Under the pieces are notes generated by a model. The model searched no databases, was not told the DNA's origin, and saw only the letters and a list, made by a program, of their open reading frames with translations. From NCBI GenBank assembly GCA_003693705.1, contig RBZT01000234.1, positions 20,282-84,281 of the forward strand: a stretch of 64,000 nucleotides of DNA, written 5' to 3'. The DNA comes from Polymyxa betae A26-41. Taxonomy: Eukaryota; Protista; Endomyxa: Phytomyxea. Below are positions 19,901-34,133 of the stretch, one piece after another. The translations under genes were made by a program, and so were the position numbers. Within the stretch, counting starts at the first letter, position 1. The number at the start of each line of letters is the position of its first letter.

Positions 19901-22900
19901 ATACAAATGTTGCTTCGACCTGGATCGTGCATCTGCATCGTATGAAGGCGCTCTGCACTAAATGCGTCCATTGTATGAAGGATCTCCATCGACCAACTCC
20001 GTGGTGAAGTCCATTGTGTCGACCGATCATCAGACTGCGTCTGACGGCATCTCTACACCAAGCCACCCCACCATCAGTCATGACAATCACCCCACAACCC
20101 CATATTCGTTACCGTTTCAGGCGGTCACGCTGTACACGCGCCGTCCAGGTCCGCAGCGACCGCAGCAGGACGCGGGCACGGAGTTCCCCGCACAGACCAC
20201 GGCGCACACGATTCCTCTCCGTGATGATCCGCAGCGCCAGCAGGCCGCGCTCATACCACGCCAATCGCTGCCGTAACTCTACCAAGGGACCCCGTCAGCA
20301 TCGGGGGCCAGTACGGCCATAGGCGATCGACCGAACCGGATCGGGCGGAAACGCGAGCGAGTGCCGCCTGATGGGAGCGTTGACGAGCGCTGTCCTGGGC
20401 GCAGTGCGAAGACCAATGATGTAACGCGGATTGTAACGCCCTGATTCGTTACACAGTGTTAACGTGACACCCAATGTGGTCCGTGAGCCGTACCGGAGTC
20501 GGGAACTTTCAGCCAGAAGCCGGACCGTGACCTGTAACGCACGGGCACCCGCCGATCGCAACTGACGACATTGGCTGCGGTGTTGTTCGACCTGGCACAC
20601 GCGAGCTATGTAACGTTGCCTGCGTTACAACACGCATTAACGGTTACATTGTGCAGCGGGGTGAGTCCGGTACGACCGGCTTACCATCGATCGAACGCCG
20701 ATCCAACTCGGGAGCGTCGAGCGATCCTCGACATAGTCTGCAAAATGTAACGTCGCCGACGACGTCGCCCGACGTAACGTCTCCATTCCTGAAACGTAAA
20801 CGGCAATCATCAGTCAAAGTGACAGCAGCCTCACAAGAGGTTGTTTTACAAGAAACGCGTAACGTGACTTGACGTGTTCACAGACACGCCGGACGATTGT
20901 AACGTGATTCTGTACTTGACGGTGATCGGACACGTAACTCTGCCAGTCATGCCACGCATGTCGGACGCGGCTCCGGACCCAGACCTTCACACATCGCGAC
21001 AGACTGCGCAGTCTAGCAACCCGGTGGGCGTACTGCCCCAGCCAGCACTGCAGCACGCGATACTTGATGTTACGAATACCACGACGTGATATTTGCTGGG
21101 CGGTGATATCGGCCTCTTTATCGAGCTATAGCGTATGGTAAGTGATGGAAACCCTAAACCCTAAGGGTTTTACGTACATGCGCCTGACGGTTCCATTTCC
21201 TTAAAGTATGCAGTGCGTGACGTCGCAGATGATGGCGAGAGACCCGGAATATCAAGCTGCGAATCATTGCGGTCTGGTAACGTCTGCTGCACCATCGCTG
21301 CAGCCAGCGCCGTTTCGCAGATAGCCGATGCGTGCGCGCTTGTTGTCGGTGTAGCTTGGCAGTCCGCCAACGCGACCAACTGGACATTACACGGCGCAAA
21401 CGGATCCGGGTATCGAAATGTGCCAGTGCCTGTGCAATAACGTTACAATGCTCAAGTCACGATAACGTTTCGCCAACTGCGAACCAGGGTCTGATAACGT
21501 AACCGGCGGTCCTCATCGACGTAGCGTTGCCACAGATGTAACGCGATCGCTATGGCGCGTTGACGCTTGCGACGGACTGCACGACGGATCAGACGGAGAC
21601 GTCGCGCTGAGCGTTGCCACGTTCGCAAAGTCCGCGATACGAAACGACCTTGGTAACGAGAATCCAGGACAGCATCATGATGCCGTTCACTGTCACATTT
21701 CTGCCTGGTTCACAGTCAGTAAACCCTAACCCTAGAGCCCTAAGACCCTAATCCTACTTCCATTTCTGGAATGCCATACAGACACTGTATGTGTTCATCT
21801 TGGTCATACAGCGGCATAATGCGCGACGGACATGTTGTCTGTCACGGACTCCGTCACGCCATTTTTGCAGCACACGTTTACGTAACAGGTACCGCACGCT
21901 ACACAGCAATCAGCTCGGGCATCTTCACATATTGGTAACATTAACAGACCGTTCACGATACAGCTGCTGATGTTTCCGTCTTTGCACATATCGTCTCCAG
22001 GCCGATATCGTTCGCATACAGATACGCAGGTCGTACACGCCCTGGGCCTTCTTCTCACCCAGTTCCTGCGCAACCACACACCTCAGCCTCTCTGTATTAT
22101 TATTGCTACCACGGATCAGTATGACCTGGGTCATATCGAGCAGTTTGTTCTTGAGATAGGCGACGTACCAGCCCCGTACACAGTGACGCAGCCTGCGATG
22201 TCGTTGAAGTAGCGTTGACCGCACCATACTACAGCGACTGTCAGAGAGGGCGGACTCCGTGACGGAGATGATGGATGGATCCCACCTTGTTCTGGTATGT
22301 TTCTGGATTCTGATGAATGATCTCCAGCGGAGGAACGTGGATACTAAGGCCCGTAGACAGTATGCGGCCTGTGTCTGTAGTAGCCGAGGTAACATAAGAT
22401 CCATGAATGACTCGATTGTTCGAGGTGGATTCTGTATCGGTACTGAATAGAGCAACGTGTTAAGTATGATCTGTAGAACTGCAGATATACGTTACCATTG
22501 GTGTATACGATACCGGACATGGGACTGCGAGCTAATGATACGTTCTTCGATGCACAGGCCCGCTCAAGAAGCGGGATCGGAATCGTGATGGAAGATCGCG
22601 TGTTTTGATACCATGTACGTAACGTTTTCGATAACTGGACAGACTCAACATCAATCATCATGTGCTGTAACGTTAAAAACACGGAACGCAACGTAAAGCA
22701 CCCGATCAAAAGCCCAGCCTCAATCAAACGCCATCGTTACCTGGCAATGAGTGATGCGTTTCACAAGATGGTGCAGTTGGAGACGACGGCGGTAACCCCA
22801 CCTCCATCTGAACCAGTAACGAAGCAGCCATCGTCTCTGTAACATCACTTCCTCGATCTGATCGATTTTATTCTGTAACCGATCCTGTCTCAATTGACGC

Positions 22901-25900
22901 CATTGAAAGGCCCATCGTCGCAGCCAGCGTCGTCGTCGTTCACGCTCAATATCATCGCGCTTCACACGACGACAACGCGCATATTGTTTCTGCATTTCCA
23001 CTGAGATTGGGGGAGCGGGGTTGGCGGGGGCCGGTATTACCCAGCATCGGAAGGCGATCTGGGCGCGGTTCTGGAGACAATGCGATCGCAGACGTTGGAA
23101 AACGTTGGAGCGGCGGATGGCTGAACGCCATATTGTGAAGCCATCGCGAACCTGATCGAAATTGAACAACGCTTTCAACAATGTGAGAAACAATTTGTTT
23201 AAAAAAAAATACAAAAAGACAGAAAAAATTCCATGAAAATGTGGACGACTTTGCCGTAGACCAGAATTCGGACCGCGTGATCCGCAAGGTAACGGAAGCG
23301 GTGGCCTTTCACAAGTGCGCGGCGCCACATGCACCAGCTGTAACGAATATACGATCTGCCAAATGGGTCGAATCACGTTTCATATCGTTGATCGGGTATC
23401 GTACCGGGTCCGTTTCCAGTTGGTGATGGCGTGTAACAGAGATGTAGCGTTAGACTCGTTATGATACAAGTTCCGATGCAGTAACGAGAGCCAGGCACGT
23501 AAACACCTAAGTCACTGTCAACTCCGTCCGTGATAACTGGAACCGAAAACCCTAGATAGCCGTAGGAGACAAATCCGGTGCAAACCAGGGTAACGTGTGC
23601 ACATACTGTCTCTGGCGGTTATTTACGATACGTTCAGGGACGTAACGTATGCGAGTACGATGAGCCGCGTAGTTCCGCCACCAGTGTATAGCGTTACCAA
23701 GAGCCACATAGCGTGATCGCCGTGCGACAGCATTGGCGCAGATCTGATTGGTGGCGGACGTGCGTGTAACGAGATGCCACTGGCGCCAAGCGTAACGTAA
23801 CTGACTGCGCAGGAACCGACTCACAGTCCGTGAGGCCAATTCACGCTGACGACGCCGTCGTAACGTGATATGCAGCCAACGATACAGCAGCTGCTGTTTG
23901 CGATGATGTCGACGTTGCGCCTGAAACGTTACGGCGACTTGAACAGGGAGTGGCGATACGGCCTGCCAACGTAACATAACGATACGTAAGAGACGCGCTT
24001 GAACAGTCTGTCCGATTCGAGCGATGGAACGGGCCGCGTTGTGTTGCGCTGTAGCGATCCGGCGCCAGTGCCGTAACGTAGAATGTAACGCCATGCGCAC
24101 ATAGCGTTGTAACAGCCGCTGACAGAGCGGTCCACGTCGAACATGATGACGCCACTGTCTCCATACGTTACAGACATTGCGCTGTTGGTCATGTAACATA
24201 ACCGCGTGCACCTTCCAGATACCCATCTGTAACATAATCAGCACGATTCCAAACGTCTCACGGTAACGTAAGCAGGTCAATCGGAACGTCAAATATGCCA
24301 ACAGACGATTTCATCCAGCGTCGATGATGGTCACGAAAAAACGAAAACCAGAAACGTTAGCACAGGGACTCACCTGAAGTCTGCGGTGTTGTATCTGTTT
24401 CGTTACAGCTGCATATGCAGTCCAGTGCCTCCATGCATTGCGGACCCTATCTGCCTGAGCTCGACACTAACGTAAACATAGGGGCAGGAGGTTAGTACCG
24501 AGCCGAGGTTAAAGAGTGACCTACCAGTGCCGCAACCAAACGCTTAGTACAGGCAACACGTTTCTCACGTAACGTGGCCCACTGCTGTAACATTCGTTCC
24601 CGGAGACGGGTCGACGAGCTGAAATTCAGGGCGATCTCGGTAGCGCGACGAGCTTGCGTCTGTATACCGACATGAGTAACGTTATAATAATGGCTTGGTT
24701 GTAACGTTACATTGGACTGGAGTTGAGCCCAGACATATTTCAGTCTTTCCAGTCGGACATGTAACAGCCGATAACAGATCAGCTGACGAGCTCGATGTCG
24801 GGCTGCAGTCCAGCGGCTCCCTGCGGACGTAACATCAAGGTTACGTTACGTGCAACATTACGGCCACGTTACAGGCATGGAATGCGGACACTACTGTACG
24901 CTGCCTCCATCGCACGATAATCTCACGGCGACGCTGACGCAATCGCCGGATACACGTTACCCATTTCTTGAGTAACAGAATCCCAGACCGGCGTGCGCAC
25001 CGTCGATCGATGCGACCTGCGTCATGGTGGTCAGGCTGGCCCCTATAGCGCGGGTAACGTGAATGCGGCCTGATATGTACCTAGTATCGTGTGCAGAGTC
25101 GATTTGCGCTGTCGGCTGCTCTGGACGTATTGGCGCCATCGCTGGAAACATGATCGTCGCGAATGTAACGTATTGGAGCATAACGACATCCATCGGGACA
25201 GTACAGCTATATGGGACAATCAGTTCCACAGCAATGACTGCAACGTAAGTGATTGAAATTCGGAACGGAAAGATCCAACAATAGGCCAGGTAGCAAAACT
25301 ATGATATTATGTTTCAACTGGAATAAACGTTACCGTGAATGAGATTTGGTGGTCTTTGTCCACGTCTCCATAAACGTAACGTGTGTCTTATAGTGAATGT
25401 GATCATGATATGACCGACCCGATTCCATAATCTTCTCATATAGATAGATCTCCTCATACTTAATAGACAGGATCGTAAAATCCGTCTCCGTCCATGATGT
25501 TCACTGCGTTCTTCACATCGCTGCTCGCTGCATTGGACAGCACGCCAATGCGACAGAGCGGCACGCATTCGGACGTAAATGTCACGGCGCAGGATACGTC
25601 GAAGTAGGTGGCGCCGATCTCGATGTAGTTGCCTCCATGCTTGTAATGCCAATCGCTGCCTGTATCGGCGTCGTAATCTGGCAGCCAGATACTCCGCCCC
25701 TATTCATGTTAGGGTTTTGAGGGTTTAGGGTTTAGGGTTTCTCACCTCGATATGCTAGGCCACCGAGCCGCCATTTTCGCCATGCTATCCTAAGACGAAC
25801 AGTACAACCGAGCTGGATTGATCGTTGTACGGCCTCCGTGCATTGTCGCCGTCGTACTAGCCGCTGATGCCAACGCAGGAACGTTGCACAGCCCAGCTGC

Positions 25901-27565: not shown

Positions 27566-27852
27566 TACAGATGAACCCAGCCTCCGATCATAGATTTCGA
27601 CAACGTCGATGAAAAGAGCCCAGCGAAGGTTAATCAGTCTCTCGTGATATGGGTCAAATCTGGAATCAGTTTTTATTATAAAGTCGTTGGTGACTCTGAA
27701 AATGAAACTTTTTATTGGATTAAAATCGACTTTGAAATTTATTACTGCATATTATAGAGAGAAATTTGAAGTGAGACGATCGAGCGCTTATAGAGAAGAA
27801 ACCGTCATCGTGGGTGCAGTGTTTGCTGACAGACAACATCATAGTTAGTCCG

Positions 27853-29710
27853 ATGTTCTTATGGAGGCTGGGGCGGCGACGGCGTCCGTTCTGCAGGTTC
27901 CTGTCGGTCGTGGCCAAGGACAACCAGCAGCGCTATGATCTGGTCGTGATCGGGTCGGGGCCGGCCGGCCAGAAATGTGCCATCAATGCTGCGAAGATGA
28001 ACAAGCGGGTGGCCATCGTCGATAGCGGCGTCATGATGGGAGGCGTCTGCGTCCATAAAGGCACAATCCCGAGCAAGACGTTTCGGGAAGCGATTCTGTA
28101 TCTAACGGGATACAGACAGCGAGGTTTCTATGGCCGAGACCATCAGGAACGGGAACGAATCGATTTCTATGATGTAAGTCCTGTCTAACAAATTCGTTCA
28201 AGCTGTCTGTAAATCTTGTTCAAATAACCTTTATTATGAATGCAGCAGTTGAATGGTTTGTGCTGTAGATTATGGAGCGAGTGAAGAAGGTTGAAGGATG
28301 GGAGACCGAAGTCATCGTCTCGCAGCTGCAGCGAAATAACGTGACGGTGACGCGAGGCCTGGCGTCGTTTATCGATGCCAATCGCATCCAGGTTCAGCAT
28401 GATCCCAGAGAGGCTGCTGAAGGAGTTGTTCATGATTCGGTACGTTTTCTGCTGCTTTTTACCTCGTTGTAATGGCTTAGCTGGTTGTCTCTTGTGTTTC
28501 ATGCAAAATCTGAATCATCTCCGTCCAGAGCATGATAGAATTTGATTACGCTATGGTAGCTACCGGAACATTTCCTGCCGGATCGCCATTATATCCCTTC
28601 GACAGCAAATACGTTTTCGATTCGGACTCGATCCTGAGCGTAACAGCCGGAAATGTTCCTAAGAATATGATCGTCGTTGGTAGTGGCGTCATTGCTCTAG
28701 AATACGCCTCAATGTTCAATGCATTACCTGGGTTGGTTGCGATGCTTCTCCCATCTTTATCGCAGAAGCGTTCGTGTTCGTGGAACAATGCGTATTGACG
28801 TCCTTTCAGATCGCGGGTGACGATCATCGACAAAGCTGCTCAATTTTTGAGTTTCGCAGATCAGGAAGTCTTGGACGTTCTTCGCGATAGCATGCGTGGG
28901 AACGGAGCAACTTTTAGGTTGGGCGAAACCGTCACCAAAGTCGAGGTTCGCGAAGGTCGCGTCCATGTCTGGCTGGAATCTGGAAAGATAGTCAAAGGCG
29001 ACGCGCTGCTATACGCTGTGGGCCGTCAAGGGAATACTGCCAATCTGAATCTGGAAGCAATCGGCATTGAACCAAACAATCGCGGTCTGATTCCAGTGAA
29101 CCAGCAATATCAAACCAGCGTCCCGAACATCTATGCTGCTGGAGATGTAATTGGGTTCCCTGCACTGGCGTCGGTGTCGATGGAGCAGGGTCGAATCGCA
29201 TCCAATCACATGTTCAAAATGCCAATCGAGAGCAGCATCAACTTGTTCCCGTACGGGATCTACACGATTCCTGAAATATCCATGGTTGGCGCTAGTGAAC
29301 GTGATCTAACACATAAACGGATCCCTTATGAGACCGGCGTTGCCAAGTTCGATGAGCTGGCTAAAGGGCAGATGTTGGGGCTCAAGCATGGGTTTCTGAA
29401 GATTCTCTTTTGCCCCAACACCAGAAAATTGCTCGGTGTCCACGTTATTGGTAAATTTGCTTTCTTTGTTGATTGTCGCGTAGTCTATGCCTGACCTAAA
29501 GACAGGTGAAAACGCCACAGAAATCATCCACATTGGGCAAACTGTATTAACGATGGGCGGAACTATTGATTATTTCAGAGACCACGTGTTCAATTTTCCT
29601 TCTTTCACTCAGGTAGAGATGCCTAGATGCAAATTAAGGCTTAGCAGAATCACGACCCTCTGTAATAGGCATACCGGGACGCCGCTTTGGACGGAATACG
29701 AAGGCTCTAA
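27853..29710 (+). CDS. sthA: Soluble pyridine nucleotide (NAD(P)+) transhydrogenase, SthA/UdhA type, with putative mitochondrial presequence
   Basis: Six exons: 27853-28173, 28269-28439, 28529-28731, 28810-29450, 29506-29612, 29669-29710. Motifs [32 protein letters not shown] (CxxxxT), [51 protein letters not shown] and [17 protein letters not shown]. Confidence 0.92.
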
Positions 29711-29728
29711 TACAATACTTCGTCTCGG

Positions 29729-31062
29729 CTATTGATCCGAGATTGTTTCACGAACTGCTTTCATCATATTATATGATACGTTAATTGGGAACGTCGCAAA
29801 CCAAATCGTTCGCTTGAACTGTCGTGCCAACCACGGAGCCTTTTCTTCTAAATGTCTCTCTATCATCATACGTTATTACAACTCTGCAACACGCTCGCCA
29901 AAAAGAGGAATTGTCGAAAGTTTGTGAGAATTGAGAAATATTGTGGGAATTTGCTACCTAAGATATCAGGCAGTCTATAGCCCTCATCACCTTCGGCAGA
30001 AACCAGTGATTCAACCAGAAGCTCCTCCATCCGACTTTTATCAACACTAAGTATCCTTGCCTCATGCTGTGCTTCAGCAAGGACGCACTCCATCTGTTTT
30101 ATACGCTCCGTTACGTGTCTCATTTCATCTTGCAGCCCACTAAGGATTCTTTGTGAACGGTGTTCTTCTTCCTCCAATAGCTCCCGAATTATTCGGTTGT
30201 GAGCGCTAACAGACCATTTTCAGAGTTAACAATCCAAAATCGATGTCTTAAAAAAATAGTGCCAACCTCGCCTGCTTTCTCCAGAGCTTAATTTGAGTGC
30301 TACGAGAACATTGTCTTCTATCTGCGGCGTTAAGAGCTGTTTGAACTACAGAAGCTTCATCGCGGATACGACGCAGCTCATTCTCCAGAACTTGCTGATG
30401 AACAGAGGCTAATGTGATAATTAGGAAAATGTTGTGATCAAAGACTACCGAACCTATGATTTGCAGCTTCACCAAATCTGAGTTTAACTGCTGAAGACCT
30501 TGGAAATCATGCGAGCGTATGGAATCGAATCCTTTCACAACAGTTTGTCTTTGAAATGGAAATTGATCGCAACGCTAATTGCCAGTTAGGAACAAAAACG
30601 AAAAAGAACATTCACTAGCAACTTGCTCGAATCGCTCAATTTCAGTAGAGAGGTAAAACTGAACTTGAGCAAGATGGCGCTGAAGTGAGAATAGAGCAGA
30701 TCTGTTATCGTCACCGTCTGCGTTTTCAAATCCTGGAATATCGTCGATGACCAGGATGAGCATATCTTCAAGCCGTCGCATGCGGGATATAGATTTGGAT
30801 AAGTTACGAATAGAAGCATCAGCCTATTATTTCTCAGTATTGCAAATCAGCACAACCGCCTTTATAAAAGTTTATTGTAGGTATGAGTACTTAGCAAACA
30901 AGGGCATAACCCCAAACTTTAGGACTTATTAAAACATAGGTGCATCAACCAAATTACGACGTACAGAAGCGGATGCATTCTGATTTTCAGGCCAATACTG
31001 GCACAAGGATGCCGACTCCTGGTCCTGACGAACAATGATTCGTCCCTCCTGGTGGTCGTCAT
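29729..31062 (-). CDS. Coiled-coil hypothetical protein (multi-exon, start uncertain)
   Basis: Minus-strand coiled-coil exon fragments (30575-30781, 30248-30538, 29866-30177). The last exon reads EEKAPWLARQFKRTIWFATF...ISDQ-stop at 29729. Confidence 0.55.
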
Positions 31063-32942: not shown

Positions 32943-34133
32943 TTAATATACCTCCCAGTGCAGGGACCAAGGGCCTTGGTAATGCTCTTTCTTGCCAGAA
33001 GAGAGATTGTCGACTTCGATTTGGGTGACATCCCGAACCTGATCAAGATTGAGCCCATTACAGAACTGAAAGTAGGCTTGCGTGACATCGACAACACGAT
33101 CATACTCAAGGCGGGCCATGTTCATCATATCGCGATGCATCATCCCAATCATGCCCATAAAACCAGCTGGTTTGCCATTGAACGTGACCCGGATTGTTTG
33201 AGAATCCATCGGAGAGGTCACGTTATGAAGCAACACAATTAAATGTTTGTGATCGGGAACGCCAGCTTCCATAGGTTGGAATTGTATTCCGGTGCCGATA
33301 CCTCCATCAACAGCAGAAGCCGCTCGTCGGAAAACATCATTATATGGAAATTTTACATTTCGACCGTATGCTGCTTGAAACGTCGTAGTGGATCCCACGA
33401 GATCATAGCCTCCGACAACCTGATCGTTAAAAGCGGCTAAATTAGCTTTCGGATGTAGTGCTATCCACATCGAAAACACGACGTTAACGAAAGAATGATG
33501 TAGCCAGAAGATCGGGTCAAATGCCGACGTCTTGACAGGAACCATTGTACCACCGATACTGTTGTGGACGATAGCATGAACGGCTTCCAGCTCGCGTTGA
33601 AATTCGCCAAAGTCGTTTCGTGTTAATGCACGATAAACGTATTCGGCAAGATACGGCGCACTCAAATCTTGCCAATCACGGGTGGTTAAGACGTTTCGTA
33701 GTTCGCCACCCTGTGCACTATCGTACATGTAGCCAGTGTTTAGAGGGTTTCGTTGCCCTTTGTATGTTGGAGAATCGATAATTGGAATATGAATCTCTTC
33801 GGTCCAGTCCCAATACGGCCACATATAGCCCAACTCGTTTTCCATGAAGATCAGATACGCCCGATGCCATGCAAGAAAGGTTGGTTTTTCGTGTGGGCAT
33901 TGATACCGGTCATCACCATGCATTCGAGCGATATCAACGTATTTGCCAGACTCTTGAAGACGGCCAAGCTTGCCAAGAAACTTGTCAAGATCGGAACTGG
34001 ATTCAGCTAGAGCTCGGATATCAACAGGTGTTTGAGCATCAGATTTGTTAAGCAAGAGAAGCACGACGCCGATCGTGATTCCAACGGCGATTAATGACAC
34101 GCCCATCAAAATTATTGCTCGTTTGCTGACCAT
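32943..34133 (-). CDS. Tyrosinase / type-3 copper oxidase with N-terminal membrane anchor, intronless
   Basis: CuA site MHG...QCPHEKPTFLAWHR and CuB site EAVHAIVH...AFDPIFWLHH. Residues ~6-28 are hydrophobic. Confidence 0.93.
   Translation of the reverse strand: MVSKRAIILMGVSLIAVGITIGVVLLLLNKSDAQTPVDIRALAESSSDLDKFLGKLGRLQESGKYVDIARMHGDDRYQCPHEKPTFLAWHRAYLIFMENELGYMWPYWDWTEEIHIPIIDSPTYKGQRNPLNTGYMYDSAQGGELRNVLTTRDWQDLSAPYLAEYVYRALTRNDFGEFQRELEAVHAIVHNSIGGTMVPVKTSAFDPIFWLHHSFVNVVFSMWIALHPKANLAAFNDQVVGGYDLVGSTTTFQAAYGRNVKFPYNDVFRRAASAVDGGIGTGIQFQPMEAGVPDHKHLIVLLHNVTSPMDSQTIRVTFNGKPAGFMGMIGMMHRDMMNMARLEYDRVVDVTQAYFQFCNGLNLDQVRDVTQIEVDNLSSGKKEHYQGPWSLHWEVY

Follow-up and report, generated by a model that had tools for sequence, protein, structure and literature searches.

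A SthA-type soluble transhydrogenase gene with a putative mitochondrial presequence in Polymyxa betae, and the eukaryotic clade to which it belongs

In a 64-kb stretch of the genome of the plant-root parasite Polymyxa betae A26-41 (contig RBZT01000234.1, positions 20,282 to 84,281; hereafter the window, whose own positions serve as coordinates), a gene of six exons at 27853-29710 on the forward strand encodes a protein that carries the full sequence signature of bacterial SthA (UdhA) and is, by these features, SthA-type and not a lipoamide dehydrogenase (LPD). We regard it as quite probable that this nuclear gene encodes a transhydrogenase (EC 1.6.1.1) that is soluble, uses FAD, needs no energy input and acts in the mitochondrial matrix of an organism in which NNT, the enzyme normally present in mitochondria, was not detected. 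The sequence of the gene is unremarkable; what has been under-appreciated is that a coherent SthA clade of eukaryotes exists, to which the gene belongs.

Gene structure, expression and family identity

The gene model was rebuilt from the raw sequence. The six exons join to 1485 in-frame nucleotides that encode 494 residues and end in a TAA stop codon at 29708-29710. All five introns (95, 89, 78, 55 and 56 nt) run from GT to AG, and their G+C content (0.36-0.49) is lower than that of the coding sequence (0.51). Contigs from public runs of three studies (X4, X6 and X3) were aligned to positions 27600-29900. One contig each from X4 and X6, which represent two studies, skips precisely the five modelled introns with zero mismatches, and a root metatranscriptome from the third study (X3) contains the first splice joint. 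The transcript extends at least from 27795 to at least 29862, and its first ATG lies at 27853. The gene is genuine, expressed and spliced as modelled; both the rebuilt model and the transcript contigs agree with the initial annotation, which had described a complete SthA-like protein over six exons with five GT-AG introns.

Family scans were run exon by exon (exons 1-5); the summed bit scores are therefore rough, and full-length scores are those of orthologues. In the NCBIfam scan, the SthA equivalog NF003585 ("Si-specific NAD(P)(+) transhydrogenase", EC 1.6.1.1; cut-off 465 bits) was the top match for all five scanned exons, with 102.1, 26.4, 60.1, 277.4 and 41.5 bits, or about 507 in sum. 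The LPD model TIGR01350 (cut-off 408.8 bits) was a distant second, with exon scores summing to about 259 bits, below its cut-off. For the orthologues from Spongospora (P0190) and Plasmodiophora brassicae (P0464), NF003585 gives 584 bits and TIGR01350 gives 337, and full-length eukaryotic SthA proteins from four supergroups score 531-585 bits on the former and 282-337 bits on the latter, which fails the LPD cut-off. When exon 4 was compared with solved structures, the top PDB match was a soluble transhydrogenase (9n4y, 1e-50), and the best LPD match reached 3e-32. Look-ups in the ESM Atlas returned generic family neighbours with no useful taxonomy.

Motifs were compared in an alignment of 91 SthA rows, including E. 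coli SthA (taken from NC_000913.3) and bacterial and eukaryotic relatives, to which the genome's own LPD was added. The two dinucleotide-binding motifs, GSGPAG and GSGVIA, align with those of E. coli SthA, and the C-terminal dimerisation domain is present. At the position of the LPD redox disulfide CxxxxC, the protein has a single Cys followed by Thr in CVHKGT (28048-28065), which corresponds to CTHWGT in E. coli SthA and to CLNVGC in the LPD of this genome; these columns hold C in 70 and T in 88 of the 91 SthA rows. The C-terminal motif region is the block NFPSFTQAYR. Its NFPS (29592-29603) lacks the catalytic His and stands where E. coli SthA has NYPT and LPD has HAHPT. With Y in 68 rows and T in 79, the F/S reading is a minority variant, and it is common to all three plasmodiophorids (the window protein, Spongospora and Plasmodiophora). 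The alignment thus bears out what had first been read from the letters alone, namely a CxxxxT instead of a CxxxxC motif, the missing His of HPT and the change from YPT to FPS.

In domain order and length, the protein matches bacterial SthA/UdhA (represented by b3962 of E. coli, STH of Azotobacter vinelandii with PDB 9n4y, and NF003585). It shares with them the GxGxxG motifs for FAD and NAD(P), the single Cys-x4-Thr, the two conserved blocks IIHIGQ and AAGDVIG, and N-[YF]-P-[TS] where a catalytic His would otherwise stand. The window gene differs from its bacterial counterparts in being nuclear with introns, in its Arg-rich N-terminal extension and in a one-residue xPGx insertion, and its protein differs in reading FPS for YPT and Q for a conserved E. 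A recent structural preprint (2025) described filaments formed by the SthA of Azotobacter and Pseudomonas.

Identity as LPD is ruled out by the motifs, the scores of hidden Markov models and the tree described below; GR and MerA are ruled out by the model scores alone. Mitochondrial LPD (E3), a bona fide enzyme of the mitochondrial matrix, shares with the window protein the flavoprotein disulfide-reductase fold family and the Pfam domains found in the SthA exons (Pyr_redox_2, Pyr_redox and Pyr_redox_dim). However, LPD has the CxxxxC disulfide and an HxHPT-x-x-E dyad, neither of which is present here, and the tree separates the two. The initial annotation had named clustering with LPD as an outcome that would count against it; in the trees, the protein lies well within SthA and separate from LPD.

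The features are distributed over the exons as follows, all on the forward strand. Exon 1 (27853-28173, residues 1-107; NF003585 102 bits), which is covered by transcripts, encodes the putative mitochondrial presequence of about 22 residues (27853-27918), the FAD-binding GxGxxG motif GSGPAG (residues 34-39, 27952-27969; placed by alignment and Pfam Pyr_redox_2) and CVHKGT. It is followed by intron 1 (28174-28268, phase 0), spliced out in contigs of X4, X6 and X3, and by exon 2 (28269-28439, residues 108-164), for which NF003585 was the sole family match. Intron 2 (28440-28528, phase 0), intron 3 (28732-28809, phase 2), intron 4 (29451-29505, phase 1) and exon 6 (29669-29710, residues 482-494 and the stop codon) are placed by the model and the transcript contigs. 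Exon 3 (28529-28731, residues 165-232 in part) contains the NAD(P)-binding GSGVIA at 28679-28696 and Pro231 (28727-28729), the inserted residue of xPGx as seen in the alignment. Exon 4 (28810-29450, residues 232-446) encodes the remaining NAD(P) domain, the central domain and the start of the dimerisation domain, and scores 277 bits on NF003585 against 158 for LPD. In exon 5 (29506-29612, residues 446-481), NFPSFTQ occupies 29592-29612, where LPD has HAHPTLSE. Intron 5 (29613-29668, phase 0) is considered with the ancestry of the gene. Beyond the stop codon, the SthA-mRNA contigs continue beyond 29862 and are then joined to sequence at about 29961. A 98-nt interval with CT and AC at its ends (29860-29957) corresponds to a GT-AG intron of a convergent minus-strand gene, whose open reading frame lies at 29866-30177 (-); the 3' ends of the two genes overlap or abut, less than about 150 nt from the SthA stop codon.

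Two related flavoprotein genes were seen elsewhere in the assembly. The canonical LPD, used as outgroup for the trees, lies on contig C68 at 23012-24397 (+) (L002:922-2307) in a single large exon with CLNVGC and HAHPTLSE; a short upstream exon beyond an intron appears to encode MILLGRRHINLVSK…, a would-be presequence-like start. The other gene is a second, strongly diverged SthA-like paralogue of several exons on contig C761 at about 22069-24031 (+) (loci L010-L015, L012:1117-3079). It matches NF003585 weakly (25-44 bits per exon) and is about 25-55% identical per block to the window protein. It retains the FAD motif GSGPAG, lacks Cys-x4-Thr, reading …SMGSIQLDLSTGAALPYFTFREA… instead, and has a degenerate NAD(P) glycine motif (GATTQG); its C-terminus still reads NYPSFAEAYRVAA. 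This copy may be a pseudo-enzyme or may have been neofunctionalised.

Ancestry and distribution of eukaryotic SthA

Three trees were computed, all rooted on the genome's own LPD as sole outgroup: two quick trees of 83 rows and of 91 rows (the latter under a mixture model), and a careful tree of 64 rows (LG+G4, with UFboot and SH-aLRT support). Eukaryotic SthA forms a single clade in each, with SH-aLRT support of 99 (83 rows) and 100 (91 rows) and UFboot/SH-aLRT support of 100/97 (64 rows). In the 64-row tree, this clade excludes all sampled bacteria, spans Rhizaria, Stramenopiles, Opisthokonta and Archaeplastida, and has short internal branches. Plasmodiophorid SthA is monophyletic (100/100), with the window gene sister to that of Spongospora. 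The eukaryotic clade adjoins the SthA of metagenome-assembled genomes of Terriglobales and Thermoanaerobaculia (Acidobacteriota-type; 94/96), and both together are nested in a wider bacterial diversity that includes the Nitrospira and E. coli types. The donor lineage may have been acidobacterial-like.

Two independent characters accord with the trees. All 47 rows of the eukaryotic clade carry the xPGx insertion, which is missing from 44 of the 45 other rows, the 45th being misaligned there. Intron 5, which falls between FTQ and AYR, shares its position and phase with an intron of the P. brassicae orthologue, a gene with two introns against five in the window gene; the other introns differ in position. 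The ancestry is bacterial. In view of the single clade, the common insertion and the named homologues described below, the acquisition is old and shared. On this comparative evidence, the acquisition is common to eukaryotes, followed by loss or by spread from eukaryote to eukaryote, and is not a plasmodiophorid event; at least within plasmodiophorids, the phylogeny indicates that the gene is vertically inherited. The patchy eukaryotic distribution may have arisen through losses or through secondary transfers.

The distribution was surveyed by an exhaustive representative search with exon 4, followed by look-ups and word searches for names. The search gave many matches of 50-62% identity whose length exceeds that of bacterial SthA. 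The named homologues include direct orthologues in Spongospora subterranea (P0190) and P. brassicae (PBRA_007794, P0464), which represent both of the other plasmodiophorid genera with sequenced genomes, at 76-79% identity over the full length, the latter located on a 1.1-Mb chromosome-scale contig. Both belong to the same length class as the window protein and have the same type of putative presequence. Among oomycetes, SthA was found in all genera sampled (Phytophthora, Pythium, Globisporangium, Aphanomyces, Saprolegnia, Bremia, Peronospora, Plasmopara, Hyaloperonospora, Lagenidium, Peronosclerospora and Nothophytophthora). The oomycete proteins, recorded for example as "putative soluble pyridine nucleotide transhydrogenase" in Phytophthora rubi (P0301), share the clade and the insertion with the window protein, and several genera have two paralogues of about 520 and 558 residues. 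In one record from Phytophthora aleatoria (P0299, 746 residues), SthA is joined to EF-hand domains, through either a fusion or a merger. The gene also occurs in brown algae (Ectocarpus and Undaria), one EukProt record was read as Rhodelphis marinus, and one MMETSP transcript is among the relatives. Two further EukProt records carry the prefixes Clim and Nk52, which we take to stand for Corallochytrium limacisporum and Parvularia atlantis. Environmental relatives (P0001, P0183 and others) fall in the plasmodiophorid-side subclade; their contigs are eukaryotic, as neighbouring genes encode RRM, Myb, PH and FAM192A domains.

Recently, the 2025 structural preprint confined soluble transhydrogenase to certain bacteria and named NNT as the enzyme of eukaryotic mitochondria, and reviews put it likewise. 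A search of the literature for eukaryotic, oomycete or plasmodiophorid SthA found no relevant study. The system, described in the initial annotation as little known, is thus essentially undescribed in the searchable literature, although UniProt and NCBI already list the orthologues of sister species under the automatic name "NAD(P)(+) transhydrogenase (Si-specific)".

N-terminal extension, NNT and neighbouring genes

Bacterial SthA proteins begin 6-9 residues ahead of the FAD motif, and the window protein is about 22 residues longer. The extension contains seven Arg, no acidic residue ahead of D23 and the sequence R-F-L-S, which agrees with its earlier description as Arg-rich, acid-free and apparently targeting mitochondria. 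It must be translated, because the next Met lies downstream of the FAD-binding motif. The extensions of Spongospora (…HRLLST…) and Plasmodiophora (…RRWLST…) are likewise Arg-rich, free of acidic residues over at least their first 20 residues and end in R-x-L-S; the three are alike in character, yet their sequences barely align. Neither a hydrophobic core of the signal-peptide type nor a C-terminal peroxisomal signal (PTS1) was found in the window protein. The extension is plausibly a matrix presequence that is cleaved at an R-3 site, in keeping with general knowledge of presequences, and import of plasmodiophorid SthA into the mitochondrial matrix is, on these features, rather likely. Elsewhere in the clade, only the long oomycete paralogue (about 558 residues) of the two has a presequence-like start, e.g. 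MLLRRSVTAASRP…. Because other members have long Ser/Pro-rich extensions or none (P0001, P0179, P0002 and the short oomycete paralogue), localisation probably differs among members of the eukaryotic clade.

NNT was sought in the whole assembly (27,085,814 bases, 1001 contigs) by profile searches run exon by exon. The published draft has 45.1% G+C and a CEGMA completeness of 91% (PMC6328671). Profiles for PntB (PF02233) and for PNTB_4TM (PF12769) gave zero candidates across the assembly, and PF01262 gave one Rossmann match of 25 bits. The profiles PF05222 (AlaDh_PNT_N) and NF006942 (PntA) gave short N-terminal matches (profile positions 5-61; 17-23 bits for NF006942), one of them at a locus on contig C1 that, judged by eye, is presumably a saccharopine dehydrogenase. 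These weak matches were rejected as NNT, as they are N-terminal fragments with no dII or dIII domains and the C1 locus is saccharopine-dehydrogenase-like. The same exon-wise search readily recovered SthA and LPD. A check of the genome for NNT, suggested at the outset, hence detected no PntB, 4TM or credible PntA in an assembly that is about 91% complete. The window protein itself has none of the PntB, 4TM and PntA domains. NNT/PntAB and SthA exchange hydride between NAD(H) and NADP(H) with the same net result, but NNT/PntAB is an unrelated membrane protein that is coupled to the proton gradient.

Other features of the window were noted in passing. Upstream, telomere-type TTTAGGG repeats make up an intron-like stretch of a giant gene (25700-25745), a hint at the telomere type of the organism. 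Downstream, an intronless open reading frame of 396 residues on the minus strand (32943-34133) has an N-terminal transmembrane or signal segment, and its His-rich motifs HRAYL, HNSIGG and WLHHSF recall, by eye, a copper centre of the tyrosinase type.

Proposed function, alternatives and meaning

In the proposed mechanism, FAD-bound SthA would take a hydride from NADPH onto its flavin and hand it to NAD+, or work in reverse. By homology, the enzyme would be an FAD-containing homo-oligomer without energy coupling; exchange would need no proton gradient, and its direction would be set by the mass-action ratios of both pools. The Arg-rich extension of about 22 residues would direct the protein to the matrix, with cleavage probably after R-F-L. 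In a matrix without detected NNT, SthA would then link two pools: that of NADPH, with its NADP-dependent dehydrogenases and the demand from antioxidant defence and biosynthesis, and that of NADH, with the respiratory chain. Reportedly, Sauer et al. found in 2004 that E. coli SthA chiefly reoxidises excess NADPH.

Several observations weigh against this proposal. The activity ascribed to eukaryotic SthA is a prediction from homology. The Glu that follows NYPT (E in 79 of 91 rows) is replaced by Gln in the window protein (29610-29612) and in Spongospora, and the window protein has Ala in place of the Arg that usually stands two residues beyond the NAD(P) beta-strand; because of these substitutions, kinetics or cofactor preference could differ from the usual. 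The presequence call draws on composition, a cleavage-like motif and conserved character, and NNT was undetectable by profile search in an assembly that is about 91% complete by CEGMA and was searched exon-wise. Furthermore, a transhydrogenase without energy coupling would, in the matrix, tend to run down a high NADPH/NADP+ ratio, which makes its physiological direction hard to predict.

Among the alternatives, the same enzyme could reside in the cytosol or elsewhere, its short extension serving no matrix targeting. The length of the extension (just about 22 residues) and the many clade members whose Ser/Pro-rich or missing extensions are unlike presequences speak for this, but an Arg-rich, acid-free extension ending in R-[FLW]-L-S has been kept in three plasmodiophorids despite poor alignment, it must be translated, and neither a signal-peptide core nor a PTS1 is present. 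This alternative is unlikely, though it retains some weight. It is improbable that the protein is a diverged flavoprotein of different activity, for instance an NAD(P)H:acceptor oxidoreductase or a diaphorase. The activity of the eukaryotic members is a prediction from sequence, and a different one would accord with the changes from E to Q (29610-29612) and YPT to FPS, and with the degenerate SthA-like paralogue in the same genome, whose presence means that the family is evolving here. However, the plasmodiophorid orthologue stands at 56-59% identity to bacterial SthA, scores on the equivalog model exceed the cut-off by a wide margin, every cofactor motif is intact and branches in the eukaryotic clade are short.

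The remaining alternatives concern the origin of the gene. The published P. betae draft was binned from metagenomic data of infected roots (PMC6328671), a source that would make bacterial contamination conceivable, but the five spliceosomal introns are spliced out in transcripts, the contig is at least 84 kb long with intron-containing eukaryotic neighbours, and the orthologue sits on the 1.1-Mb P. brassicae contig. Spliced transcripts and the eukaryotic gene context rule contamination out, as the initial annotation had already concluded, and we assign it no weight. A recent, lineage-specific transfer from bacteria into P. betae or plasmodiophorids would be in line with a family that is overwhelmingly bacterial and patchy among eukaryotes. 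Moreover, Acidobacteriota-type SthA is no less similar to plasmodiophorid SthA (56-59% identity) than are other eukaryotic copies (53-58%). Nevertheless, such a transfer is very improbable, given a eukaryotic clade of four supergroups (100/97) without sampled bacteria, an insertion unique to that clade and an intron position common to the Polymyxa and Plasmodiophora genes. Horizontal gene transfer specific to plasmodiophorids is disfavoured by the tree, the common insertion and the named homologues. Of the earlier claim that the gene was horizontally acquired, the bacterial ancestry therefore stands, and the lineage-specific transfer falls to the single clade, the xPGx insertion and the orthologues elsewhere. 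With the shared intron position and the homologues added to the clade and the insertion, the gene largely turns out to be widespread and vertically inherited in eukaryotes, an outcome that had been named beforehand as one that would count against the claim.

A broader scenario can be put forward tentatively, at slightly less than even confidence. A single ancient acquisition from an Acidobacteriota-like source would have given rise to a pan-eukaryotic, insertion-marked SthA clade, of which scattered members remain in Rhizaria, Stramenopiles, Archaeplastida and unicellular Opisthokonta, and the plasmodiophorid enzyme would be mitochondrial, standing in for a missing NNT. The value of the finding lies in its evolutionary and cell-biological context rather than in a new kind of protein. 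The SthA clade includes major crop pathogens and virus vectors among plasmodiophorids and oomycetes. As some of its members look mitochondrial and NNT was undetected here, the manner in which mitochondria lacking NNT balance NADPH and NADH becomes testable, as does the question of whether these parasites need an enzyme that is absent from plants and animals. If the scenario holds, matrix NADPH and NADH would be linked in these parasites irrespective of membrane potential, by a route that is missing from their plant hosts.

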